A stretch of DNA of 63,842 nt, filler included, from Trichosphaerium sp. ATCC 40318 (taxonomy: Eukaryota > Protista > Tubulinea): assembly GCA_038496445.1 (NCBI GenBank). It is 5 parts of 5 records of this genome, joined end to end, with 100 filler letters (N's around TTAATTAATTAA, not from the genome) between each part and the next. Parts side by side here need not be neighbours in the genome. Positions count along the whole stretch, not along the records: positions 28,357 to 44,467 come from JALMLS010000036.1; 4 more parts are not named here. One strand, 5' to 3'. The translations under genes were made by a program, and so were the position numbers. Numbering within the stretch: position 1 is the first letter of the stretch; each line of letters starts with the position of its first letter. The notes below the pieces were generated by a model that saw only the letters and a list, made by a program, of their open reading frames with translations, ran no database searches and was not told where the DNA came from. Below are positions 28,357-44,467 of this stretch, piece after piece.

Positions 28357-30476
28357 ATCCTTCTTTAGTAAAATGATTTGAAGCGTCATGAATCACTTTA
28401 ACATGATTGGTATGAACAGGACAGAACGAACCACTAACAAAAGGGTAAGATCCAAAATAAGAAAAAACGGAGAACAACCTTAACACTAGCACTAGGTTTT
28501 TGGAAGGATCAGCTTCAAACTTCTAAGAAAGGTATTAGTTTATATATTCTATCAATAGTATGTTTATACCTTAATCTTGTTGTATGGAGTGCTTGAATAG
28601 AATGGGTACTTTGGAAGAACCTTACCAACAATATCACTTAAAAGTTTTGAACATAATGTACCAATCTTTTTCAAAGCAGCTTGTGTACCTACATAGAAAC
28701 TAAATCAACGACTAAGTCTTTTTTTAACACGGAAAAATACAAGTTTTTACAGCTATTGTTATCGAAAAAAACCCCACAAAGTTAATATGAGCGAAATAGT
28801 GGTGGCTTGATTCTTGTTGACAACTTTTTTCGTTTGTGGTGGAACTTACCAATGTTATTGTAAAAATACATGTTAAAGTAAGCCAAGTACATTTGATGGC
28901 GTTCTTCAAATCGGTTTGTTTTAGGTATAATCTGGTGGTATGAGTCCATAAAAGCCTTTGGAGGCGGTTTCCACAGGCTCATAAAACTGAGTTCGAATTC
29001 ACTATTTTGTAGTAAGTATCGTGTTTTTAACGGTCGTTAGTTGTACTTGTGGGCGTAACAAGCTTGTGAATCAAACAATACTATTTCTCCCTTATCAGTG
29101 ACTCCCCAGTTTTCAGAATGCATATCTCCATGCGTAAGAACCGGCTTAATTGTACTTTCTATGCCTGTATTGACAAGTTATCAAAGACCGTTCGATTTTG
29201 TCTTTATGATACCTTCAAAGAACCAAGGTAAGCAATCCAATACTTGGTCAAGCATACAGCAGATAGGGTAAGCTTCTGGGTGTAAATTTGTTTTTAACTG
29301 AGTTACGCCTGGAGCAAATCTTTGTTCCTTAAAAAAGGTGATCCAGTTTTGTTCCCAACCATTCTTTGTGGTCAAATTATCGGCAACAATATTGTTGTGG
29401 AACCCAAACTTGCCATCTACCAAACAATTCAACGTTAGAAATATGTAGCACCAAATATTTGTTTGTAACGTACTATCGGAGATTCCCTGAGAATGCAATT
29501 GAGCTAGCTTTTTACCAAATTCAACATGATTCTTTGATGTCTTTTTCACGAAGTTAAAGTACTCTATTAAAATAAAGTATCCTTGAATAGATACTAAATC
29601 TCCATGGCAGAACAACTTTGGAGTACGAAAAATGCCCGTATCAGCAATAGAATGCAAACTATTGATTTCCAATTCAAGCGCTTGTTTTCCTGTTTTATTC
29701 CTATTTATCTATGAATTCGTGAGACTAAAGATCTTGTGTGAAGTACGGTATACCTTCAAAAAGTAGGAATCTCCATTCTTTGTTGTAATGAAGAAGCATA
29801 TATTCATTTTTGCTTTCACAGGTCTTATGTCAATATCTATCCCAAGGTGTTTTTGTAGTAGTATATTCTCAGAAATCTCTTTCGTTAGTTGATTGATTGT
29901 CATTGCCATTCGCTTATAAAACTGTTTCTGAGGTGTTGCTACAGCAGATTTCTTTGCTTCTGGAATAGTCGGAGCACTATCCATATCGACACCCTCGGCT
30001 ATAAGCAATTGTTGCTGTAACCTTCCACGCGAAGTTGCTGTAATAATACCAGTATTAGGCTTTTGATACCTCCGCTCACTTACATTTTCTTGTCTGCAGC
30101 GACGCTCCAATAGAACGTTTGCCAGCGTAAATAACGCGCCACCATGGTATATCTCTACTTGAAGACGGGACACCTCAACAATATGTTGTTTAAAGTTTTT
30201 CATTGAAAAATGACATTAAGAGATTAATCAGTTATTTTCAAGGGCTTTTAAGAAACGCCGTACGATTTATAAAACCTGCTGTAGCTCTTGCGCCAAGCGG
30301 TACGCCAGCTGCACTCGCTAATTGTTGGAATGTAACTACAGTCCCCTTTTTGTTGGTTAAAACGACCACTGACGCTTAAATAAACGCACTTTAGGTACTT
30401 TAAGCAGTGCTGTGGTGTATTTATTAGTTGGTTTCTCTTTCAAACGTTTCAGCCTCTTTTTAGGCGGTTCTGACAT
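28357..30476 (-). CDS. Fusion protein: alkyltransferase-like (ATL) domain + fructosamine-3-kinase-like domain + NMNAT/cytidylyltransferase-like domain (3' truncated)
   Basis: Hand splicing with GT-AG introns gives MSEPPKKRLKR...LLKVPK|GTVVTFQQLASAAGVPLGAR...R|VPSSSRDIPWWRVI...RLQQQLLIAEGV...YFLK|...FGKKLAQLHS..GKFGF..WITFFKEQR..LTHGDMHSENWG..LFDSQACYAHN|EFEL..FEERHQMY...TPYNKIK|KFEADPSKNLVLVLS|GSFCPVHTNHVKVI. Confidence 0.78.
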
Positions 30477-31305
30477 ACCACGAAGTTAGATTACCTTGCT
30501 AGGCGTTGAGTTTATGAAAAGTCCAGAAAAGTTGACAACTTGTAACCTTGTATGGCTACCTTAACAGACAGAACTTAAAAAGCACGTATCAGTTTCTTTA
30601 CTCCTTTGGTAGTTTGAGAATCCTTTATCATTCCATTTTCGAACAGTATCAAAGTGTCAAATGATTGTACACAACTTTGCTTAACAATTCAGAGAATGTT
30701 CGCTAACTCTTTAAGTAATCAGGGACGCCCTGAGCTCAATACTTTGATTTAAGTGGTGTACAAGGTCTATCGAGTGGTATATTTACCTCTATTGAATACC
30801 AACATGGAAAGAGAAGTGTCAACAACGACTATTGAACCAAATTCAAAAGTACCCGATGAACTGTGGCTTAAAATGTTTTCCGTAAGTAAAAACGTACCCA
30901 CTACGAGGCTAAGCGTTTTTGAGCAATTTCCTGATTTTCTTTCACCTAAAATCACCACTAGGAGGTTCCTGACGTGTATTTACGCGTTGTAGCATGTGTT
31001 TGCGTACGTTAACTTTATTCTAAATGTTAAAAACTTAAAAATCGATAGCGCCGTTGGTACCATGTCAGTCGCGATTTTGAATGGTACAATGAACATTATA
31101 GCATTCTTTTTCCTTAGGAATTGACTCGGATTTACGGTAATGTCAATTTTCGTACCTTCTGCGATGGCATTGTCGTCAAGGACGCAATATAATCGCTATG
31201 GGTACAATTAGGTGTCAACACGGCTCACACATTGTTATTTTAATCTACAGTATTAATAGTGAACCACAACTTGCTAAGATTGAGATTCGTCGTACATTAT
31301 TGCCG

Positions 31306-31412
31306 TTAGATTCACTTGTTCTTGTTAGTCCAACACTACCAGATTGGAGGAGAGACTCCGTCTCGCTCGGCTGCGACCCTACCTGGATCAACGTAGCCAG
31401 AGACCCATCCCA
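31306..31412 (-). repeat. Split direct repeat B2 (copy of 31589-31695)
   Basis: TTAGATTCACTTGTT...GAGACCCATCCCA present twice. Confidence 0.95.
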
Positions 31413-31464
31413 TTTATTGGATTAATCTCTTGTACAAATCAATAAATTACATTACATTAAAAAA

Positions 31465-31695
31465 CTTTTTCTATCGTAATCTGTCATTGATTGAACTGCT
31501 ACTCACCGAAGTTGTTACACTGGAAACTACCTTAAGTAACAAACTACCCCGCTTATCAAACGCCGGTAAAATACTATTTGTACCGTCATTAGATTCACTT
31601 GTTCTTGTTAGTCCAACACTACCAGATTGGAGGAGAGACTCCGTCTCGCTCGGCTGCGACCCTACCTGGATCAACGTAGCCAGAGACCCATCCCA
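31465..31695 (-). repeat. Split direct repeats B1 (31589-31695) + A2 (31465-31588), mimicking the circle junction
   Basis: Adjacent copies of both element termini joined at ...GTACCGTCA|TTAGATTC... (+ strand). Confidence 0.95.
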
Positions 31696-31700
31696 AGCCT

Positions 31701-32711
31701 TTATAACCATGAAGGCCCATCTACTCCAATCTTGTCTAAGACCTGCGCACTTGCTGTCTTCAAAAAATCCGCCATTAACTTCGGATTATGAACCCTTTGC
31801 TCTTCTGATAACACTACATATATCAGATATGCATCTGACCGCCAGTCGCCCATCACTTTGATCATCTCAGGAGACACACCTGCTGCTGATGCAAAAGTGG
31901 CACCACCTCTTCTAAAGGAATGCCCTGCATACTCTTTTGAATCATAACCTAAACCATTGAGAACATCCCTCGTTCTCTTCACAAACTTTGCATACGTCAT
32001 TTGAATATACCTATTCTTAACCTTATACCTAAATGCTGACCCACCCTTCGTGGTTTTAGCCACCTTCAACATCCTTTGAAGTGCCTTTACCGGGCACAAT
32101 TCATTCTCCATCAATACATACGGTATTGTGTGAATTCTTTCCCTAAATAAAATCGTCTTTGTTTGTTTGACACCTAGCCAAAACCCAAACTTTGACATCT
32201 TGATATTATCCAATGCAACATGTCTATCCATTTGAAACGAGTCCTCTCGTCTTGGTACCACATTGCCAACCCTCAGCATGCCCCAGAACGCAAACATTGC
32301 CGCACACCAATAAACCACATCACGCACTCTTCGAAAATCTAAAATCACCTTGATTTCGTGTAATATCTTCGGTGTAATAGGTCTTTTTCTCTCAACCTTA
32401 TCACCAAACTTGCGCCTCATACCCCTTAACATATCATAGTAACCCACACAATCCATTCTCGGATCGCCATAACCCAATCTCTTACACAACCATACCCAAT
32501 GTGATAAGTAAACCCTTATCGTGTCAGGTTTCAAACCACCCTCCACGTTTTCTTCTTTAGACCATAACGCCACCACAGACGTTAACGCAAATTCATCGAG
32601 AGGAAACCACCTCTCCTGAGGTATATCCAAAGCCAACAAGGCCATGATCATTGCTTTCCAAGCTGATCTACGATTCTTCTGCGTCGTGACTGGGTACGCA
32701 TACGCTACCAA
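31701..32711 (-). CDS. Tyrosine recombinase of the Ngaro-like element
   Basis: FWGMLRVGNV (R), KQTKT (K), LCPVKAL, GHSFRRGGAT (HxxR), GDWRSDAYLIY (catalytic Y). Confidence 0.93.
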   Translation of the reverse strand: MVAYAYPVTTQKNRRSAWKAMIMALLALDIPQERWFPLDEFALTSVVALWSKEENVEGGLKPDTIRVYLSHWVWLCKRLGYGDPRMDCVGYYDMLRGMRRKFGDKVERKRPITPKILHEIKVILDFRRVRDVVYWCAAMFAFWGMLRVGNVVPRREDSFQMDRHVALDNIKMSKFGFWLGVKQTKTILFRERIHTIPYVLMENELCPVKALQRMLKVAKTTKGGSAFRYKVKNRYIQMTYAKFVKRTRDVLNGLGYDSKEYAGHSFRRGGATFASAAGVSPEMIKVMGDWRSDAYLIYVVLSEEQRVHNPKLMADFLKTASAQVLDKIGVDGPSWL

Positions 32712-32751
32712 TTCTTTCCTTTTTTCTTCAACTTTCCTCTTTAAATCTACA

Positions 32752-34329
32752 CTAGTTAAATGAACCTACCAGACACCTTAAAAATCCCTTGTTTTTTGAG
32801 CTCCTTTCGGAAAACACCAAATTTAAGCCGGAGAGTGGATCCGCCAACACATTCTCTTCCGATTTAATATACTTTGGGCACAGTCTAAACCTGTGCACCG
32901 CTGACCATGTTTGTATATCTCTCACAAACCCCATAAAAACTTCTTTCTTGGCCACCAATTTCTTCACATGTGAAACTGTGCCTGTATTGTCGATAAACAC
33001 ATTGACTAGTTCCTTATTTTTCCACAAATGACCCCATTCCTTTACAGCCATCCAAAAAGCATAAAGCTCTTTAACCCCAATATGCCAGTCTTTTTCTTTC
33101 CCAACAAACTTATGTACCAACCACTGGTTGTCAAAGAAAGCGCCTGCTGCAAACCCTGACGCATCTGTTTGTACCCATGTGCTAACCTTCTCCAACGGTT
33201 TAATTAACACTGCTTTCCCATCCCACATATCCATAAACTTAGACCACCATAATAAATCTTCCTTGGAACCTTTAGACAATTTAACCCATCTGTTATTGGA
33301 ACCCGTTCCAGCCATGTTTGCATATATGCGCCTCAAGAATGTAGCACCGCCATAGACTACTTGTGCTGCAAAATTAAGTGTACCTGCTACACTTTGTAAA
33401 TCCTTAACCCTAACCCTATTTGCCTTTAGGGTTTCATCCAGCATAACCCTAATCTTCCTTTTCATTTTGCCCGTCAGTGATATCTCCAAACTGTTCATAT
33501 CAAACTTGTACCCCAGAAATATTAACTGCTTAGTTGGACCTTCCATTTTTTCCTCTGTAATAATAAAACCTAAGTCTCGTAATAAACGAGTTAACACCCA
33601 CATTGCTTTCCCACATTCCTCTTTTGTTCTAGCAATAATCAACCAGTCATCAATGTACACTACATGTGCCTTGTAACCCAATTTTGCAAACGCCCTTGAT
33701 ATCATGTTCATAACTTTGACAAAATACCAAGGTGCCCAATTCCACCCAAATGGTAGTCGACCGTCTCGATAATAAATACCCTTCCACATAAAACCAAACA
33801 TATCATGATCCTCTGGCGCAATGGGCAACATCCTGTATGCGCAGAACATGTCAATTTTACCTAACACCACATCATATCCAAGGTGTCTAACCCATTCAAT
33901 CGCCTCTTTAAACGCCCTCAATGAAAAACCTGGCGCATCTGCCAAATCATTTGTTGACATACCCTCTGGAAGATTCAAGCACACCAACCGCCTTATCTTG
34001 TTTCTAAACTTACCATAGTCATCATACTTAGGTACTACTGCCAACCTATTGACCTTTCTCCCAATCTCTGACGGATATATCCATCCCAACTTAGCTTCCC
34101 TTTCTATATCTTGTGACAACAACTCTTCCCATTCTTTACACGTGCTTGAGTTAGTTAACTTTGACTCAATCACCACCGTTCCTTCTGGTACTACCTTGAT
34201 ACCAGATACTATCCAACTACGTAACCATGGCCAATCCTCATCCTCAACCATAAACGCTTCCCACACACTCACACATTCAGACACAGACGCAATTTGAAAA
34301 CAATTCTTTTTATTCACCTCCATGCCCAC
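32752..34329 (-). CDS. Reverse transcriptase + RNase H of the Ngaro-like element
   Basis: VVPK, KIDMFCAYRMLPI, LPFGWNWAPWYF, YIDDWL, FLGYKFD, LQSVAGTLNFAA; RNase H TDASG, HIGVKELYA, FIDN, NVLAD. Confidence 0.95.
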   Translation of the reverse strand: MGMEVNKKNCFQIASVSECVSVWEAFMVEDEDWPWLRSWIVSGIKVVPEGTVVIESKLTNSSTCKEWEELLSQDIEREAKLGWIYPSEIGRKVNRLAVVPKYDDYGKFRNKIRRLVCLNLPEGMSTNDLADAPGFSLRAFKEAIEWVRHLGYDVVLGKIDMFCAYRMLPIAPEDHDMFGFMWKGIYYRDGRLPFGWNWAPWYFVKVMNMISRAFAKLGYKAHVVYIDDWLIIARTKEECGKAMWVLTRLLRDLGFIITEEKMEGPTKQLIFLGYKFDMNSLEISLTGKMKRKIRVMLDETLKANRVRVKDLQSVAGTLNFAAQVVYGGATFLRRIYANMAGTGSNNRWVKLSKGSKEDLLWWSKFMDMWDGKAVLIKPLEKVSTWVQTDASGFAAGAFFDNQWLVHKFVGKEKDWHIGVKELYAFWMAVKEWGHLWKNKELVNVFIDNTGTVSHVKKLVAKKEVFMGFVRDIQTWSAVHRFRLCPKYIKSEENVLADPLSGLNLVFSERSSKNKGFLRCLVGSFN

Positions 34330-34335
34330 AAGTTT

Positions 34336-35874
34336 TCATTTTTTCTTACATTCCCTGTAGACGTGGTCTTCCTCACCACAAAACATACAAGCATGCTTAC
34401 GTCTACAATCACCAAACTTCTTCATGAAGTGGCAATAACCCTTGAGGTTATAATCAATGCACGTATTGTGCCTACGCCCCAAAGCCAATGCCCATTCGGA
34501 ATACTTTCCGCCATTGCGATCCCTTCGCCTTGAGGGGCTACCCTGATCCTCCTCCTCTTCTTGCTCACCGACAGCACCACCTAAATACAAGGTAGAAATC
34601 ATAGAAGGAAAATCATAAGATCCACTGGATTTTTCCCAGTAACGCCTAACTGCGTTGTCAAACTTACTTACCCGCGTAAGTGTTAAAGTTGAAGACAACT
34701 CCACCAGCAGCTGATGATACATTTCGTAACTTTTTAGCTGAGCGCTGTTGATTAGACCGCTCCTTGCGTCTTCTTTTAGCTGCAGCAGCACGGTCTGCAT
34801 CCGAGTCAAACGATCTGCGACGTTTTTTATCGGATAGACCTTTGGGGCTGTCGTTGCTTTCTTTGTGAGAACCACCGGTTCCATTGCCGTTGCCGGCACC
34901 ACATAGTGCAAGTAGTACACTGGCATGTGCAGCCCACTTCTGAACACACCTGTCAGTAGAGGAGCTTCACGCCAAAGCTTGAAACGGACCTTTTGAGTGT
35001 CCGCATTCATGCCGTCAGGTGTACGCCCAAGAATCGAGCGCATAGCTGCCAATCCACCCTTTTGGTCAACTGCGGATTCTTTCCCACTCGCCTGCTCCTG
35101 CATGGCGCCCCTTTGTGTCATACTAGACAACTTGGCGGTACCTAATGACTCATTAGGTCCACCACCCAAACGTTTTTGGATATCCATCAAGACATCGTCA
35201 GCTCTCGACTGGAGGGCTTCTGACGCCTTAACTTCATCCCACGTCGCCCTACTAGGCGTTTTTTGCGTACTTGGAGTTGGTAGAACTTCCACAGGCGTTC
35301 TTGAACCATTGTCAGCACCATGCTTTCGTGATTCCTCCATTACCGTATCCATCATTCGCGTAAAAAACCCTTCCAACGAATGCTCCAAATCTTTACGGAA
35401 AACACTTAGTTTCTCCTCAACCATTTTCTCCGCTACTCCAACAACAGTAACCCCAGTATCGCCTTGAGAGTTGTTAGTACCCCCCTTTTGCGATCTCCTA
35501 GTCCCAAAACCTTGTGCACTATTTGACCTACCTCTAACTCTCTTAGGAGTGAATGCTACGCTCGCCAAGTCCGTAAACCACTCTCCCGACTCCTTTGCTA
35601 AAAATATCGTACCGATATTGTGCCAATCTGGGTAAGAACCCACCCTGAGCTCTTTTGCGACCGCTGCAAGCACATCACCCAATACCGGCTTTGTTAAACC
35701 TTCTAATTTTGAAAATAACCCCAAGCCTTTATAAGCACCATCTGGGTCTAACGTTGTACGCAACGTGTCAACCCAATCACCTTTAGTCCCTTTCCTTGTT
35801 TTCTCCAAATCACTAATAACGCGTACTGCTTTAGAAGCGATCTCTACTTTTCTTTTTCTATCGTAATCTGTCAT
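34336..35874 (-). CDS. Gag-like protein of the Ngaro-like element
   Basis: 512 aa first ORF with C-terminal Cys/His cluster CIDYNLKGYC...CRRKHACMFCGEEDHVYREC. Confidence 0.85.
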   Translation of the reverse strand: MTDYDRKRKVEIASKAVRVISDLEKTRKGTKGDWVDTLRTTLDPDGAYKGLGLFSKLEGLTKPVLGDVLAAVAKELRVGSYPDWHNIGTIFLAKESGEWFTDLASVAFTPKRVRGRSNSAQGFGTRRSQKGGTNNSQGDTGVTVVGVAEKMVEEKLSVFRKDLEHSLEGFFTRMMDTVMEESRKHGADNGSRTPVEVLPTPSTQKTPSRATWDEVKASEALQSRADDVLMDIQKRLGGGPNESLGTAKLSSMTQRGAMQEQASGKESAVDQKGGLAAMRSILGRTPDGMNADTQKVRFKLWREAPLLTGVFRSGLHMPVYYLHYVVPATAMEPVVLTKKATTAPKVYPIKNVADRLTRMQTVLLQLKEDARSGLINSAQLKSYEMYHQLLVELSSTLTLTRVSKFDNAVRRYWEKSSGSYDFPSMISTLYLGGAVGEQEEEEDQGSPSRRRDRNGGKYSEWALALGRRHNTCIDYNLKGYCHFMKKFGDCRRKHACMFCGEEDHVYRECKKK

Positions 35875-35975
35875 TGATTGAACTGCTACTCACCGAAGTT
35901 GTTACACTGGAAACTACCTTAAGTAACAAACTACCCCGCTTATCAAACGCCGGTAAAATACTATTTGTACCGTCA
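35852..35975 (-). repeat. Split direct repeat A1 (5' terminus; includes gag ATG)
   Basis: Matches 31465-31588. Confidence 0.95.
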
Positions 35976-38562
35976 CAATCTGGGTCAATTCGTTTTACGT
36001 TTTATTGATAACCAAATACCGTAGGATAGTTCTGATTACTGAAAACTTAGCTATTTATCTTGAGCAGTACTCAACAGAACGCTTGGCAGAAATTTTGACA
36101 ACTAAAAACCCTTTTATTTTGGAAGGTAAACTCGAGAGACGTAACCTAAATTACAAAATCAGAAATGACAAAGGGACACTAGTTAAAATAAAGCAGTATA
36201 GCAGCCTGTACAGAGTAGTTGGTGTAATGTGTGAACACCCAAACGTTCTAAGGCATTCTTTTAAACTGACTAAGGATGGAAAACTAGCCATTGTTTTTCA
36301 TATTAACAGAAAGCAGTACGTGCTGCTGCAAGAAATCGTCCTTTTCTTTTCTTATTTTCCAAGTCAATTCATAGCACGTGCCGTTTTCTTACACTGAAAG
36401 TACATTCTTGTATCATTTTTCATTTGAACAAAGATCTTTTATTGTATAAAAAAGCCAATTTTCACGTGTATGAACTACCTTATTGCTAAGAGTTTATGTT
36501 TCACTTAGGTTGGAAACGATGATTTGTAACGGAGAATCAATACCGCTTTTACTTCATGAGTATTGTTTAACTGATTTGCAATATCTCTGTTGCCTTAAAT
36601 TCGCATCGGTACAGCAAGATTTTAATGATATTTATTGTAACATGATTGAGCAAAGGTTGTTGATCTTAAATCTACTTATTGGTCAAAGACTCTCAGTCAC
36701 CTAAGAAACAAACTTAGGAGTGACTACTATACACCTACGGTACATTTGTATGACTACTATTAACTATATTTAACTGTGATTAGTCTGTTTCTTGTACATT
36801 AAAGCAGCCAGCTGCATTGAAAGTGAATATTCATGAGCACGACATCTCTTGGATGACATACATTGAAGATAACTTACACAGAGGTGAAGACAGCGCTTAT
36901 TTTTTAGAAACAACTCTGGTCTCTTTATTAATTTTGCCTTGATGTAGCGTTTCAATACTCCACCCTAGCTTATTGGCCTAAGATTCAGTTGAATGCTTTC
37001 TATGACTTAGAAAGAAAACAGTTTGTTTCTGAAATACCCCCAGAAAAGATATTCAAAGTCTCTTTTGATGGTGCACGATCAATCACAAACTTGTTCTAAC
37101 AGATCCTTGTTTTAGGTGGTGTTATTGAAGCTGAAGATATTCTTGAAAAAAGAATCAAAGGTATTCAGCGCTATTCTTTCCAAGCCCCTAACGTTGGTCT
37201 TTTGTAGTACTGGCTTTGGTACTAGCCAAACCTGCACTTATAAGTGAAAATACTGGCTGCAAGCTAAACAATGAACAGTTAGAGCCTCTTTGGAGAACTA
37301 AAGCAACTCTCATAGTAACGTGCAGTCGCGTATCAAGTTGCTGGTGCAACGCGCTGAGTAGTAATATAAAGGATGGTTATGCATTAAAGATTGTACTTGT
37401 AACAACAGCAAAACAGTACAATAGTTACAAACAACAAGATATTTTAGAAGCAGGTAAGAATGTCTGGTGTTGTTGTTTCTCACTTTATAATAGATGTTGT
37501 TATTGTTTCGTATCCTTTTTTGTGTAACCCTAGTTACATACATGTTGCCATGAAAAGTGTTGCAAATTGTATTGCAACTAAGAAACCGTTTGTAAGAAAG
37601 AGAGCCAAGATGCTCACTAATCATCAGCGTTCAATTAGACCAAGAAAACTAAGTGAAATGAGAAAGGTACTGATTAAATTTAAAGTCTAAGAAAAACGAA
37701 ATTACTAATTATCACGTGATTTTAAAGGAAGCAAATAAATACAAGGATGGAGGAGCTACCTTCCCTTTTGTACTGAATAATTTTTACTGGCATCGTATCA
37801 TCCTTGATGAAGTAAATCAAGTCTTTGATAAAAAGGAACATTTTTATGTTGAAGAATTATCTTCATTCGAAGGAAGATCTAGGTGGGTTGTAAATACAAC
37901 GCCTTTTCCAAACTGGTACAATACATCTTACTTTTTCTTATTGATCTTGATGTTCACAGTTCTTTTTTATCCTTCTTAACTTTACTGAAGCCTTGATCTT
38001 GATATCAAGATTTTCTTTTGTTTGGATATAGTTTCTTAAGTTAGGCGTGACCGTCACTGTACTTACTCTTTATTTTTAGGTTTACAATAAGAAATATAAT
38101 GAAGTTCCTAAGGCTAAGATCTAGTGACCCACAATTTGAAAAAAACACATTAGAATACACTAAGTACGTCTTTTTAGTATTCTTTACTTTTCGAGATTAT
38201 TTATTAACTTATTTGTAGCTCGGTCATTGCTGATATACTTTTCTCCAATCTTTATTGGTAAGAAATAAGCAGTTTTCTTTCAAGTTGTATTTACTAAGTG
38301 TTTGTAGGAGGTGTAGCACAACAACTAAAGAAGAAATTTGAAAATGTTTATCATTTAAAAAAGTGCAAGGTCAACAATAAACCAAAAGTCTTTTCACTGT
38401 CACGTGTCAAAAGTGTCTTAGAACTATAAAAGAGCGTGCTGCGTTTTATGAATTATTATTTACTTGAATATGTCACCGATGTACCTGTATTGTATGCGTA
38501 TCGATTACTTTAAAGGCAATGAGTAATGAACATTGTTTATTTTTAGTGTACATTAAAAGGCA

Positions 38563-40070
38563 CTACAGACAAAGAGACACAAGTGTTACAATAGAAAAAA
38601 TGTACATCATACAAGTAATAGGTTTCAACTTTGTTGATAGAGACCTTATTGTTGTTGTTGGTTGAGGTGTTGGTGTTGAATTAGTTGGAGATAGTGCGAT
38701 ACTTGAAGTTGGGGCTGATGTTGTAGGTGTTGCAGTTGTTGGCGCCACAGATGGCATTGGGGCTGTTGGAGGCTGTGTAGTTGGAGGAGCTGTAGGTGCT
38801 TCTGTTGTTGGAGGTGCAGTTGGAGGAAACGTTGTTGGTGGTGTAGTTGGTGATGAAGTTGTAGGAGGGAGTGTTGTTGGAGGCAATGTAGTTGGAGGTA
38901 ATGTTGTTGGAGGTGGTGTTGTAGGAGGTAATGTAGTTGGAGGTAGTGTTGTAGGAGGTAATGTTGTAGGAGGTAGTGTTGGAGCTATCGTTGTAGGTGG
39001 TTGTGTGTAATTAAATACTGCAGTGGTTATTCCACTATCTACTAGTTGTCTTGGGAGAGAAAATCTACAGAAATGAGGTTATAAAAAGAGCGAGGATCAT
39101 TGGCACTTACGTGAGATATGTTGTATTGAAATCAACATCCCTGAGTAAACGGTAAGTTGTTGATGTAAGATAAAAACCTAACAAAGGCATTTAGTAAAAA
39201 GTAACCTTAACAAGCACAAGCACAAAAAAGGCGATTTTTTCGCTAGATTTTTATAACACGTTGAATAGTATTATAGTGAACCACGAACTTGTAACACTTC
39301 ATAGTTTGTAAAAAAAAAGCTTGAGTTTAAACTGTTTTAATGTACCAGTTACGACGGGTTGATCAAAAGTGCACTCGAATTTTACAGTAGAACCTACATT
39401 CATGGTTGTGGTTCTGTGTTCTGAGAAGGTTAATGAGTCAGAGCCAAAATTAGCGCTATAATCAGCTAATAAGGTGAACGAGTATTCTGTTGTTGCGTCT
39501 ACTGTAAACGACGAAACAGTTGATGGCGGTATATTTCCGCCAAAGGAGAGTGAGCACGTTCCTGTGTCTCCGTCACCTAACTACGTTAGCTTCTTCCGCA
39601 ATTAAGTGAGTAGACCACAGAGCGTTTTTTGTATTTTCGCTTGTGGGTGGAGCTGATTTTGCGTGTTTTCGTGTTTAATGTTGACGTACTTATTGATAAG
39701 ACTATTGTGAAAAGGGTACATAAAACTAGAAATGCTTTAATCATGGTGATGGTCTTTAGAAATTAAAAACTCCGAAGGTCTAGTTTCCGAAAATTTCGCA
39801 CTATTGCCAGAAAACACAAATCTATTTCTGAAATTGTATCCAATATCTAAAGGGAGGTTTGATAGTGTGGTTTGAGGCAAGCTCAGAGCTAATGCGTTGC
39901 TTTTTTTGTAACTTGAAAAGTAATTGTACACGATTTTCGGCTGCAGCCAAAAAACAACCTCGGTCTTTTGTTTTTTTCGTCGCTAACACAAATTAAAGAA
40001 AAAACATGGTACAACACATGGTTGTAAAGTGTTACGTGAATGATATTAACCAACCGGCAAAATATGGTCA
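38563..40070 (-). CDS. Surface/mucin-like protein with Pro/Thr-rich stalk and hydrophobic C-terminus (possible GPI/TM anchor)
   Basis: (PPTTL)n 15-bp tandem repeats at ~38860-38985, TAPPTT repeats, and C-terminus MMYIFSIVTLVSLCL. Upstream exons present; start uncertain. Confidence 0.6.
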
Positions 40071-40433
40071 TCAACCAATTCGTGACACAAAAAATGCAAG
40101 TTGAGAATAGTATTGGAAGTTTAAGGCACAAAACAAAATAAATATTGTATTTTCGCTTGTTCATAAAGGTACTATCTGACTACTAAATTTTTTGTGGTAT
40201 TCACTGATAAGATTTCACACTTGACACTTCTTTTGGAAGCAGCGAATTCTTGAAGAATGGTTATGCGTATTCGATTGAGTATGAATAAGAACTATGGCCA
40301 ATCAGTGACATTTCAGGTGCCATCAAGCACCTCTAACCTCAAACATTAGGTTGTACAAGGACAACCAAAAACGTGTTTGAGAAATGCTCACAAAAACAAG
40401 CGTAAAGTCAGTAGTAGAAGTGCTGTGTATTAC

Positions 40434-41416
40434 TCAGATTCCATGTGACAAGACCATTTCAGATGCTAAGTGAGCAAAGGCTTCGTTAACTAAATTAAGG
40501 TTAAGGTACTAAGGTGACAAGACAAACAAGTTTTTACCATTTATAGAATCCTTAGATGATATTTCAAAGTATGTAAGAGCAAATTCTTCAGCAAAATCCT
40601 AAAGATAGTTAGAAAATAACCTAGTGTCAGTAGCACTAATGCCTTTGCAACTTCATAGTCTACGATACGCTCACTGCTGAGGTCGCTTTTGGATCCAACA
40701 AGTATTTTCTGAACATCGTCACTTGCATACCTCTCACAGAGCTGAAGATACCTTATGATGTGGTCATAACTTTCTTTGTTAGTAACATCATACACAACAA
40801 TGATACCATGAGCTCCTCTATATGTACTAGAAGAAGGGTTTTGTCTTTCTCTACCTATAGACAAAGGTTTAGTTAGGGACCGAATCTGATAATAATATCA
40901 AACCAAATAATTATAAACCCACGTTGACATACGGTAACTTTGATATATTTGTAACTTCACTCTTTTTCCATTGATATTTACAGTTTTAGTAATCTATATG
41001 TAAAAAACTCACGTGATAAGAATATAAAACAAGGCTCAACAAAAAGTGTGAATACTCTGTTTTTCTTTGACACGAAAACCAAAAATGGAAAACAAAAGTT
41101 GAACTTACAAGTCTTTTGTTTCCTGAATGTGCGGAAAAAGTATCATCAACAAATCTTTGCGCCATATTACTCTTTCCTACGTCATTATCTCCTAGCATAA
41201 CGATTTTGAATAAATAATCACTAACAATGGAGTCAGGAAAGTATTAAACAACAAATTCTACTTTACTATGCGGGTTTAGACTCTCTGGTGCCGTTAAAGG
41301 CTTTGGAACGCCTATCTCATGTATTAGCTTTCAAACATTGTCATTCAAGAGTAAGCAGAGCTATATCCTTTCTCAATACCTTTTTGTGGTTTTTTTGTGC
41401 TGCTCTTACTACCCAT
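40434..41416 (-). CDS. Atypical Rab1-like small GTPase with MGSKSS N-terminus and no C-terminal Cys
   Basis: DYLFKIVMLGDNDVGKSN, KRVKLQI, YRGAHGIIVVYDVT, ILVGSKSDL, EISSK, VNEAF...SHGI*. Joining the N-terminal exons needs a 1-nt correction near 41268. Confidence 0.72.
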
Positions 41417-41624
41417 GTGGAGTTTTGTCCAAATAAGCTTGTTTGCTTTCAAAGAAAACGTAACTACTTATTGGGTTTAGTTGGTTACAAATGTAACCTA
41501 CCACGTGTACTCCATCTGTGAGTATGGTGCATGCTTTAATTGGTTGCAAGAGTAACGTGAGAAGGTAAGCAAGACATTCTCTCTTTTACAATTGATTTAT
41601 TTGTGTGAACGTGTGTAGAATATT

Positions 41625-43305
41625 TTACAGAGTAACAGACTTTATAACACCAATCATAGATACAGTCTACAAAAATCAATTTAACTCTAAGTTTCAATAA
41701 TTTAATGCCGTACTGTTACTCCTTCACGAATAATGATAGTACCTAGCTTCGATATATTGCAGTAAGCAGTACAGAAAAGTGGCTTTGAAGGTGTAAATCT
41801 TACAAGAGCAACATCACCTTTCAAAAGATACTTTGGGTTTTTAGCAGCACGTTTTTTGGGGTGACTGATTTCTAAAATTTCATCCATCCTACAACTCATA
41901 GTGGCCGTGTGAACACCTAAAATGATTACTAAAGTTAGTAAAGATCAACCTCAACTTCAAACAACGTAACTGCAGAAAGGAGAGAACCCAGCATGTATTT
42001 CATTAGGAAGATAAATAACTTTGACTTGAGCTATAAATTCTGACACATAACAGACGCTTGTGGGTTCCTCCAACGTTTGCTCTATAAGTACACAACCCCT
42101 AGAAACCCCATCGTATTCAATATCTATATGTATACCTACAGATTCACCAGCAAAAGCCTAAACCAAAAAGAGTAAGATATTGTCAAAACACATCATAAAT
42201 ACAGTACCTTGTCTAAAGGTTTGTTGAACATTTCAATCATTTGTACCGTTACTTTACGTCCTGTAGGAGCCACAATAAGTGTTTGACCTACTTTAATGCT
42301 ACCTCTTGCTATGTATCCAGTAACTACAGTACCAATACCACTAATCTTATGCACTTGGTGTACCGGCATACAAAATGGCGAATTAATGTCCAATACCGCT
42401 GGAGGTAAATTATCTATAATCTCAGTTAAACAATCTCCTTTCCACCAAGAAAAACGTCTTGACGTTCTAAATACGTTTTCATCTGTTAACGGAGCAACGG
42501 GGCAAAACCTAATATTGGTACGTTTGTACCCAGCCCTAAGAGCTTCTTAGCATACATCACTTTTGTAAGCATCACAATTTCCTTTAAAAAAACATTTCGC
42601 GTACTTTTTAAGTCCACGTGACACTATTTCTACTGCTTTATCAAATATATTTGAATCAGGATTTGAACGAATAAAATTGATTGCAATGATAATGAACTTA
42701 AGACCTTGTGCATAGGCTATTGATGCAAGTTTGGTTAAAACCTCAGGATTTGGATAATTAGCCGAGATTACAACCAAACCAATATTAGCTTGTGTGTATC
42801 CAATAATAGCATTCTTAAGACAAGCCACACTCCCTGGAGTATCTATCAAGGTAACCTAGTAAATGATAAACAACAAGAGGTCAAAAGAAAAGCCAAAAAA
42901 ACTCACGTGTCTGTTTTGTGTTTCGAAATGTGTTGTGAATGTAGTTCTTCTCATAGGGACTTCTCTTTCGCATAAAGGATATGGATTTACAAAACTTGCA
43001 TAACTGAAAGAACGCCTATCTACTAAACCTTGTCTAATGCGTTCATGACTAGCTTTACGCCTTCGAAAAAAGAAAAAAGTAAGAACACATATTTGTTTGC
43101 AGAAAAAAACAACTCTCCAACTATGGACACGTAACACGTAGTCGCTTGCAAGGATTGTATACAATAATGATGGATATAATTCGTACTCTTCTGACATATC
43201 ACCACAATTGTAGTATAAACTTCCTGCAAGGGTAGATTTACCAGTCGCTATTGGACCAAAAACTGCAATGCTTAAGTTTGGTTTCGATCTTCTATTGTAG
43301 TCCAT
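41625..43305 (-). CDS. Divergent EF-1alpha-like translational GTPase
   Basis: KPNLSIAVFGPIATGKSTLAGSL, FET, IDTPG, LKNAIIGYTQA, WWKG, VHKISGIGTVVTG, FIAQVKVI, KNPKYLLKGDVALVRFTPSKPL, GVIKSV. Confidence 0.85.
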
Positions 43306-44467
43306 TTTTGGTAATTGGCGTTGTCTAAAATACAAAGTAAGTCAGGTGTAAGGCGTGTTTGAATAAGTACAAACACTAAATGTTTTGTTCAAAAAAACAA
43401 TACAGAGGGTGGAAAAGGACTTAAATTGTCGTGTTTCGATAAATTCCAGCGTAATCGCGTTGATTTCGAGAGTTTGAACGGGTTTTCGTTACGAACGTAA
43501 TGATAAATTTAGTATAAGGCTCTTTTGACCTACAACGCAATAATATAGCGTATTTTCATTAATTTAAGAGTATTATGTACTTTAACTGGTATTCAACACG
43601 CAAGTGTGGTATTAATGGTACGCAATTCTGTTGATTTAGCGAACAGCCCGTGTGTTTAATTAAACGAAGTGCATTTAAGGGCCCTTAAGTCATCGTTGTA
43701 CTTTTGCCCGTTATAATGTTGTAGTCCAATTGTTTGACCACCATTCGAATAAAGCAATCTCTTGTAAACTAAGTAAAGTAACACTGTCTATTTCCATATC
43801 GGAGAAGAGAAAAAAGCGAGATAACCTTAATGCCAATCTAAAAAACACATTCGCGTTCAAAGAGGAACCACTACCAGCGTTTTGAAACATACAGCTAATA
43901 GCCAGACCTTGATAACATGTTGCTTAGATCCCATATCCTTTTACTCTCTCAGGTTGAGGTATGTTGGTTCCTGTTCATGACCGTCCGGTCCCACTCTATG
44001 AGGTTTTCACATTTTACAACAACATCATTGGATGCACTCACGGCTACAGTTCTATACTAAGCCCCAAACTAAACTTTAGATACAATGCACATAATGCTTA
44101 ATCAATTACTGCTTTGCGAAAAATTCTTCCAATACTATTTGTGTCACGTTTTTGTTGAATCATATTCTACATGCTACGGGTTAATATCATTCACGTAACA
44201 CTTTACAACAATCAATTATTTGTGTACTGTGTTGGTAATATTTCGTGTCTTTCTTCTCATCTCTTAATTTTTGTTCGGGTTTCAACAGCGAAAAAGGCAA
44301 ACCAAAAGATGTTTGACCTGTATGTCAGACTATCGGTCTATAACTACCTTTCGAGCAATACAGCAACAACTATGCACGAGAGTTATCAACTTGCCTCAGA
44401 CTACACTATCAGCCCCACAATTCAATATTTTCCAATTCAAAGAATTTGAGTTTTGTGCAAATTGTTC

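Follow-up and report, generated by a model that had tools for sequence, protein, structure and literature searches.

The window analyzed here is a stretch of 63,842 nucleotides from the protist Trichosphaerium sp. ATCC 40318, in which positions 28,357-44,467 come from record JALMLS010000036.1; all coordinates are those of the window. On the minus strand of this piece, from 30476 down to its edge at 28357, lies what we judge, on balance, to be one real, expressed, intron-rich gene whose productive mRNA would encode a nuclear protein composed, in order, of a start resembling a nuclear localization signal (NLS), an alkyltransferase-like (ATL) domain without the acceptor cysteine, a divergent kinase of the fructosamine-3-kinase (FN3K) family, and an adenylyltransferase of the nicotinamide mononucleotide adenylyltransferase (NMNAT) type. 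Such a protein would most likely serve as a nuclear, DNA-tethered kinase-adenylyltransferase pair linked to NAD metabolism. The triple fusion is a new architecture of known domains, and its kinase-NMNAT half is already known as one automatically annotated metagenome protein.

Exons were placed by six-frame reading, a reading of the reverse complement, and a search for junction motifs, and the coding sequence was assembled by script. The resulting model has 11 exons and 10 introns, all of them GT-AG, and splices into one frame, as the first-pass annotation of this DNA had anticipated; that frame has 497 codons and zero stops, and an in-frame stop precedes the ATG by 9 nucleotides. Eight of the introns have 44-57 nucleotides, one has 90, and one has 161. 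The features named in that annotation, MSEPPKKRLKR, GARATAG, IPWWRVI, QQQLLIAEGV, and the fructosamine kinase motifs, all lie on the minus strand at the places it gave. Its claim that the end of the ATL domain and the start of the kinase share one exon also held, in that 30037-29754 is a single open exon carrying both the C-terminal ATL helix and the N-terminus of the kinase. The parts of the gene are listed below (E, expect value; X1 and X2, two public RNA runs).

Exon 1, 30390-30476, minus strand: ATG at 30476-30474, MSEPPKKRLKR, a basic NLS-like PPKKRLKRLKEK, and the first ATL helix up to VPK; joined to exon 2 in RNA (X1 record 4).
Exon 2, 30264-30345, minus strand: ATL helix-turn-helix, GTVVTFQQLA...GARATAGFIN; Pfam DNA_binding_1, E 0.0038.
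Exon 3, 30084-30173, minus strand: ATL pocket motif IPWWRVI and a basic loop; DNA_binding_1 profile positions 48-65; GTAAGT donor.
Exon 4, 29754-30037, minus strand: last ATL helix QQQLLIAEGV, a linker of about 30 amino acids, and the kinase N-lobe (VKAKMNICF loop, YFLK lysine).
Exon 5, 29474-29708, minus strand: kinase N-lobe and hinge; within a Fructosamin_kin match, E 5e-15.
Exon 6, 29213-29416, minus strand: kinase GKFGFH...NW.TFF region; Pfam match; spliced to exon 7 in X2 record 8.
Exon 7, 29047-29164, minus strand: catalytic loop HGDMHSENWGV and Mg-binding FDS; Pfam, E 2.8e-6; spliced on both sides in RNA (X2 records 7 and 8).
Exon 8, 28850-29001, minus strand: kinase C-lobe to YFYNNIG; in-frame donor G|GTAAGT at 28850/28849, alternative donor at 28891/28890; Pfam, E 5e-8.
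Long intron, 28689-28849, minus strand: 161 nucleotides, or 202 in the form observed in RNA; about three times the usual intron of this gene.
Exon 9, 28570-28688, minus strand: last helix of the kinase fold and a linker; spliced to exon 10 in X2 record 7.
Exon 10, 28479-28522, minus strand: end of the linker and the first strand, LVLVL, of the NMNAT-like fold.
Exon 11, 28357-28433, minus strand, cut by the edge: nucleotidyltransferase signature GSFCPVHTNH.

The donor of exon 2 is ambiguous among 30264, 30276, and 30257; each preserves the frame, and none is supported by RNA. At the two ends of the model, VPK|GTVVTFQQLA spans an intron of 44 nucleotides (30389-30346), and LVLVL|S|GSFCPVHTNH spans one of 45 nucleotides and then runs off the edge at 28357. 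If the long intron is left unspliced, the frame continues for 25 codons to a stop at 28784-28782. An Rfam scan of the piece returned no match, so the long intron holds no known RNA.

RNA evidence consists of contigs from runs X1 and X2, which are 100% identical to the window where placed; such contigs may lose minor forms and merge overlapping transcripts (e.g., within the 119-nucleotide exon 9). Seven junctions are supported by spliced contigs: exon 1 to 2, 5 to 6, 6 to 7, 7 to 8, 8 to 9 (through the alternative donor), 9 to 10, and 10 to 11. Intron 1 is removed in X1 record 4. X2 record 8 joins exons 6 and 7, and its 8 loose letters are the end of exon 5, the sole support for the junction of exons 5 and 6. 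X2 record 7 joins 29086-29047, 29001-2889x, 28688-28570, 28522-28479, and 28433-28357, that is, exons 7 through 11, and the kinase and NMNAT-like exons are therefore linked in RNA. Beyond the edge at 28357, the X2 contig extends 388 nucleotides and the X1 contig 73. A pseudogene was rejected on the 497 open codons, canonical splice sites, and expression, and an assembly chimera on contigs from independent runs that are 100% identical across the junctions.

Two further splicing observations concern this gene. In X1, a contig of low depth (record 3) connects 30480 with about 30409, implying a GT-AG intron at 30478-30410 on the minus strand that drops the ATG and the first 22 codons, with intron 1 retained; this could be a 5' isoform, either minor or aberrant. 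Likewise, the long intron has two 5' splice sites 41 nucleotides apart, of which the one seen in RNA gives a premature stop, and these paired donors at the fusion junction may reflect unproductive or regulated splicing.

The kinase-NMNAT half of the fusion has a relative, P0007, a protein of 492 amino acids on contig Ga0606064_1971 of Joint Genome Institute (JGI) metagenome sample 3300062347, to which JGI gave the automatic name 'fructosamine-3-kinase/nicotinic acid mononucleotide adenylyltransferase'. It encodes Fructosamin_kin followed by CTP_transf_like in one uninterrupted open reading frame (ORF) that is free of introns along 1.5 kb; the contig stops short of its 5' end, and its NMNAT-like domain is complete. 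The spliced model and P0007 share 33% identity over 306 amino acids (E 2e-45), and the alignment stays colinear across the kinase end, the linker, and GSFxPVHxNH. The C-terminal domain of P0007 is closest to human NMNAT1 (E 1e-11), contains the second signature ISSTAIR, and scores 38.1 bits against PF01467 (cut-off 21) and 64.9 bits against TIGR00482, under the equivalog cut-off of 112. In its AlphaFold model the kinase has a predicted local distance difference test (pLDDT) score of about 90, and the NMNAT domain, at a pLDDT below 50 and with a shallow alignment, is uninformative. We consider P0007 eukaryotic because its contig neighbor is a Roc/Ras GTPase.

That adjoining gene (L001:1658-2479) has an N-terminal extension of about 150 amino acids and is separated from P0007 by a spacer of only 178 nucleotides, a distance suggestive of a compact eukaryotic genome.

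The divergent kinase subfamily has a third member in another metagenome. This fragment, L009 (the P0001 contig, JGI 3300051389, 977 nucleotides), contains an intron and the motifs FLKINQND, HGDLSCNWAV, and FDPVPFY, and it is too short to show flanking domains. The subfamily is rare: an exhaustive HMMER search with a 175-amino-acid kinase piece against 1.84 billion representative proteins returned only 20 weak matches, P0007 among them, and no self match. Word-index searches with P0007 (whole, and residues 240-492) returned only P0007 itself and a plain NMNAT-like protein, P0021; a metagenome scan with P0007 found six ordinary FN3K loci, matched in the kinase part only; and an ESM Atlas search gave plain kinase clusters only, all scoring below 0.9. 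These searches added no member to the subfamily. The triple fusion was found nowhere else in these protein searches, which did not start from the full spliced sequence, and in the literature searched we found no description of either the kinase fusion or the triple fusion. The claim that no described protein has this architecture is thus upheld for the triple fusion and must be narrowed for its kinase-NMNAT half, which exists as the JGI metagenome protein.

Sequence comparison shows the identity of the kinase. Pfam Fructosamin_kin (PF03881) matches three exon pieces at 55.8, 27.2, and 32.9 bits (cut-off 22.4), and the kinase N-terminus in exon 4 aligns with the N-termini of stand-alone FN3Ks. 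Catalytic residues are retained, namely the beta-3 Lys (YFLK), the alpha-C Glu, the HGD..N loop (HGDMHSEN), and the Mg-binding Asp (FDS); the catalytic D217, N222, and D234 of human FN3K all have their equivalents. The residues that contact a substrate analogue in human FN3K, taken from bioRxiv 10.1101/2025.07.30.667714 and PMC11754801, are replaced at six positions:

Human FN3K W219: His in the window protein, Ser in P0007.
Human FN3K F252: Trp in the window protein, Cys in P0007.
Human FN3K N287: Tyr in the window protein, Glu in P0007.
Human FN3K H288: Phe in the window protein, Lys in P0007.
Human FN3K H291: Asn in the window protein, Phe in P0007.
Human FN3K F292: Ile in the window protein, Leu in P0007.

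In human FN3K, W219 and H288 contact ATP and substrate (PMC11754801; bioRxiv 10.1101/2025.07.30.667714), and with a model substrate W219H raises activity and H288F lowers it (PMC11754801). W219 is retained in 12 of 12 canonical matches that cover the position and is lost in the window protein, P0007, and L009, which have this loss and HGDxxxxNW(G/A)V in common as derived marks of the subfamily. Because six contact residues are replaced, the substrate is probably not the classical protein fructosamine, and we predict from sequence a catalytically competent kinase with a rebuilt pocket.

In the model the frame enters the GSFxPxHxxH start of an NMNAT-type domain, as the first-pass annotation proposed, and this domain is cut by the edge of the piece. 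This NMNAT-like start, LVLVLSGSFCPVHTNH, presents a GxFxPxH/TxxH signature after a beta strand. The motif reads GSFCPVHTNH in the window and GSFSPVHKNH in P0007, with 14 of 23 positions matching at the start of the domain, and it aligns with P0007 and, via P0007, with human NMNAT1. A piece of 25 amino acids had a sole, nonsignificant match in the PDB, the NMNAT motif of NadR (E 0.79). No hidden Markov model (HMM) matched the NMNAT-like part, whose pieces of 25-55 amino acids are too short, and its identity therefore rests on the relative P0007.

The N-terminal domain is, by sequence comparison, of the ATL type, with similarity to the C-terminal DNA-binding domain of MGMT. DNA_binding_1 matches two short exons at 17.5 and 12.6 bits, below the whole-domain cut-off of 27; the matches are colinear (profile positions 14-44, then 48-65). 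In a scripted pairwise comparison, the spliced region shares 38% identity with E. coli Atl/YbaZ over 79 amino acids and the whole domain (E 2e-11); PWWRV aligns with PWHRV and QQQLLIAEGV with QRQALLAEGV. In the PDB, all of the best matches to exon 2 are MGMT proteins, human or bacterial, led by residues 107-134 of human MGMT. The acceptor Cys of PCHR is replaced by Trp (PWWRV), and the Arg finger is retained (GARATAG vs AARQVGG in YbaZ), as are the pocket Trp and the overall length and order of the domain. The same alignment places a basic 8-residue insertion ahead of the last helix.

We read these parts as one protein because the single open frame of the last exons has no ATG, one donor matches its phase, the 41 bases between the paired donors encode conserved kinase residues, exon 9 encodes a kinase helix, and P0007 is a fused ORF. 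Exons 9-11 can be read without a stop in just one frame, for 79 codons, which at this composition would occur by chance with a probability of about 0.003; the remaining two frames contain 6 and 8 stops. With no ATG in the open frame, the NMNAT-like part lacks its own start. Near the end of the kinase, the sole donor in phase with the NMNAT frame is the perfect G|GTAAGT at 28850/28849. The 41 bases removed by the 28891/28890 donor encode kinase residues that are aligned both by Pfam and by human FN3K (E 1.8e-4). Exon 9 aligns without gaps with P0007 residues of about 238-275 and with the C-termini of stand-alone FN3Ks, and the AlphaFold model of P0007 confidently shows its counterpart as a helix within the kinase domain; by alignment and model, exon 9 is the exon for the last helix of the kinase fold. 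On these grounds we infer an in-frame splice from kinase to NMNAT. The fusion architecture claimed in the first-pass annotation is accordingly supported: the ATL domain and kinase share an exon, and both spliced RNA contigs and homology to the fused P0007 connect the kinase with the NMNAT-like start.

Several observations weigh against this reading. The sole RNA junction across the long intron uses the 28891/28890 donor, 41 nucleotides upstream of the in-frame donor, and shifts the kinase frame to a stop at 28636-28634; positions 28886-28850 are covered by no contig, and the in-frame mRNA is a prediction. The annotation had singled out the intron of about 160 nucleotides as a point where transcripts might end or start; transcripts do cross it, and the one junction observed breaks the frame. 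Contigs may also have merged overlapping transcripts inside exon 9, and junctions of exons 2 to 3, 3 to 4, and 4 to 5 are covered by none. As contigs lose minor forms and may merge transcripts, the in-frame mRNA is neither established nor ruled out by the contig joining exons 8 and 9. The piece contains just some 40 residues of the NMNAT-like domain, and P0007 and L009 are cut before their N-termini, leaving no second known case of the ATL part. Within the domains, the nucleotide-flipping Tyr of the ATL is Phe (VTFQQLA vs TTYGDVA in YbaZ), PWHR has become PWWR, with a second Trp for the His, and the glycine loop of the kinase has AK for GG. The pocket residues differ between the window protein and P0007, which could signify relaxed constraint rather than a new specificity. 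Finally, human FN3K was not stabilized by nicotinamide riboside (PMC11148063).

With respect to function, we tentatively propose, as a possibility suggested by analogy, that the kinase and adenylyltransferase, the conserved core of the protein, take two consecutive steps on one precursor and are tethered to nuclear DNA by the ATL domain and NLS. Fusions of a kinase with a PF01467-type adenylyltransferase that act in sequence are common, as in NadR and HldE. Here, the kinase would phosphorylate a precursor of the ribosyl- or ketosyl-amine type (model: nicotinamide riboside to nicotinamide mononucleotide, NMN), and the adenylyltransferase domain would adenylylate the product (model: NMN to NAD+) to give a pyridine-type dinucleotide. 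The ATL domain and NLS-like start would hold the pair on nuclear DNA, preferentially at O6-alkylguanine, so that it would sit in a setting, alkylation damage, where NAD+ is consumed. The logic would be that of bacterial NadR, built from different parts. PARP1 binds and poly(ADP-ribosyl)ates MGMT at O6-methylguanine (review, PMC10779285), and, according to a multi-omics study of 2024, NAD compounds bind to human FN3K and NADH inhibits it, effects that the study left unexplained (PMC11148063). A more specific form of the proposal, which we regard as speculative and unlikely, is damage-targeted NAD+ salvage, in which the ATL domain would bind O6-alkylguanine in chromatin, the FN3K-derived kinase would phosphorylate a precursor resembling nicotinamide riboside, and adenylylation by the NMNAT domain would then make NAD+ where alkylation-induced ADP-ribosylation consumes it. 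If true, it would represent the first case of an ATL joined to metabolic enzymes and the first riboside kinase of FN3K fold, and it would offer a gene-fusion clue to the unexplained link between FN3K and NAD.

Ranked next after the two-step mechanism, and doubtful, is a protein whose domains do their textbook jobs in parallel: the ATL would sense alkylated guanine, the kinase would deglycate nuclear proteins (e.g., ribulosamine-type adducts from ribose phosphates or free ADP-ribose), and the NMNAT would resupply NAD+ for PARP at the lesion. Each domain is a recognizable family member, the catalytic residues of the kinase are intact, NMNAT1 is a nuclear enzyme, and ADP-ribose glycates histones; the reported link between PARP1 and MGMT (PMC10779285) points the same way. 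However, W219, F252, N287, H288, H291, and F292 are all replaced in both the window protein and P0007. The loss of W219, H288, and their neighbors, residues that hold fructosamine, makes textbook deglycation doubtful, and the label of 'multi-damage repair protein' given in the first-pass annotation goes beyond what is shown.

It is rather unlikely that the locus does not encode one protein, with the ATL-kinase ending in the unspliced long intron (28784-28782) or at 28636-28634 and the NMNAT-like exons representing a separate downstream gene, an untranslated tail, or read-through. The one RNA junction across the long intron is indeed out of frame, the intron, with about three times the length of the others, could be a former intergenic spacer, and a contig across two genes is no proof of a single transcript. 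However, the NMNAT frame lacks an ATG throughout three confirmed exons and its 79 codons are open only in the phase of the GTAAGT donor, exon 9 encodes the kinase's own last helix, the form observed in RNA deletes kinase residues conserved in Pfam and human FN3K, and P0007 is continuously fused. Least probable of all is an ATL-like domain that has lost lesion sensing and become a general DNA-binding or regulatory winged-helix module, as a NadR-like regulator or enzyme or a nuclear anchor, for which the Phe, the PWWR motif, the basic insertion, and the precedent of the NadR helix-turn-helix domain speak, but the Arg finger, pocket Trp, and overall ATL length and order are retained.

Returning to the proposed triple fusion, its parts can be set beside known systems. 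ATLs are known as small proteins that sense lesions and pass O6-alkylguanine on to excision repair. Like E. coli Atl/YbaZ and S. pombe Atl1, the window protein has a single domain of the MGMT C-terminal type, Trp for the acceptor Cys, and an Arg finger; unlike them, it is fused to two enzymes, its flipping Tyr is replaced by Phe, and PWWR takes the place of PWHR. The ATLs known so far either stand alone as small proteins or, in archaea, are joined to EndoV, and a review of alkyltransferases names no fusion partner beyond EndoV and a histone-like tail (PMC10779285). The kinase resembles human FN3K, FN3KRP, and A. thaliana 6OID in Pfam family, fold, and catalytic residues and differs from them in the AK loop, the six changed contact residues, and the domains added on both sides. 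As a mark of eukaryotic NMNATs such as human NMNAT1-3, the window protein has the signature in the form GxFxPxHxxH, and the P0007 domain is closest to NMNAT1 with ISSTxIR present, whereas NMNAT1 has TxxH where the window motif has HxxH. P0007 resembles the window protein in its kinase marks (HGDxxxxNWGV, CYAH, and loss of W219), linker length, and GSFxPVHxNH start; it differs in being intronless over 1.5 kb, in its truncated N-terminus, and in its complete NMNAT-like domain, whereas the window gene has introns and the start of the domain only.

Bacterial enzymes provide two further comparisons. NadR combines a helix-turn-helix, NMNAT, and a ribosylnicotinamide kinase of the P-loop type, and the window protein as proposed would likewise hold DNA-binding, kinase, and NMNAT parts in one chain. 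The order of domains differs, however, and homology does not extend to all three, in that the window kinase has an FN3K/APH fold and its DNA-binding domain is an ATL, unlike the helix-turn-helix of NadR; the resemblance would be one of functional analogy. In HldE/RfaE, one chain combines a kinase with a cytidylyltransferase-like adenylyltransferase, and the two act sequentially on one sugar substrate. It shares that pairing with the window protein and differs in kinase fold, substrates, and the absence of a DNA-binding domain.

The cellular roles of FN3K-family kinases are poorly understood, and gene fusions are among the best clues to functional coupling that sequence can offer. A kinase-NMNAT fusion in at least two distant eukaryotes would provide an independent link between this kinase family and NAD metabolism, along with a concrete protein for assay. 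An ATL domain placed on two enzymes of metabolism would suggest that recognizing a lesion can bring in metabolism and not only nucleases.

The remainder of the piece contains other features. A DIRS-order tyrosine-recombinase retroelement occupies 31306-35975 on the minus strand, about 800 nucleotides upstream of the ATG of the fusion gene. Its split direct repeats are 100% identical (31306-31412 to 31589-31695, and 31465-31588 to 35852-35975), so the insertion is probably recent. Its ORFs are:

35874-34336, minus strand: gag-like, with a zinc knuckle.
34329-32752, minus strand: reverse transcriptase/RNase H (Pfam RVT_1).
32711-31701, minus strand: recombinase-like.

On the minus strand farther along the piece, 40541-40864 and 42547-43335 contain exons from two GTPases, one of the Rab/Ras family (Pfam Ras, E 1e-15) and one of EF-Tu type (GTP_EFTU, slightly under cut-off). 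Finally, an ORF of 107 amino acids at 38563-38886, also on the minus strand, consists almost entirely of mucin-like Pro/Thr repeats and falls in a region of strong GC skew.

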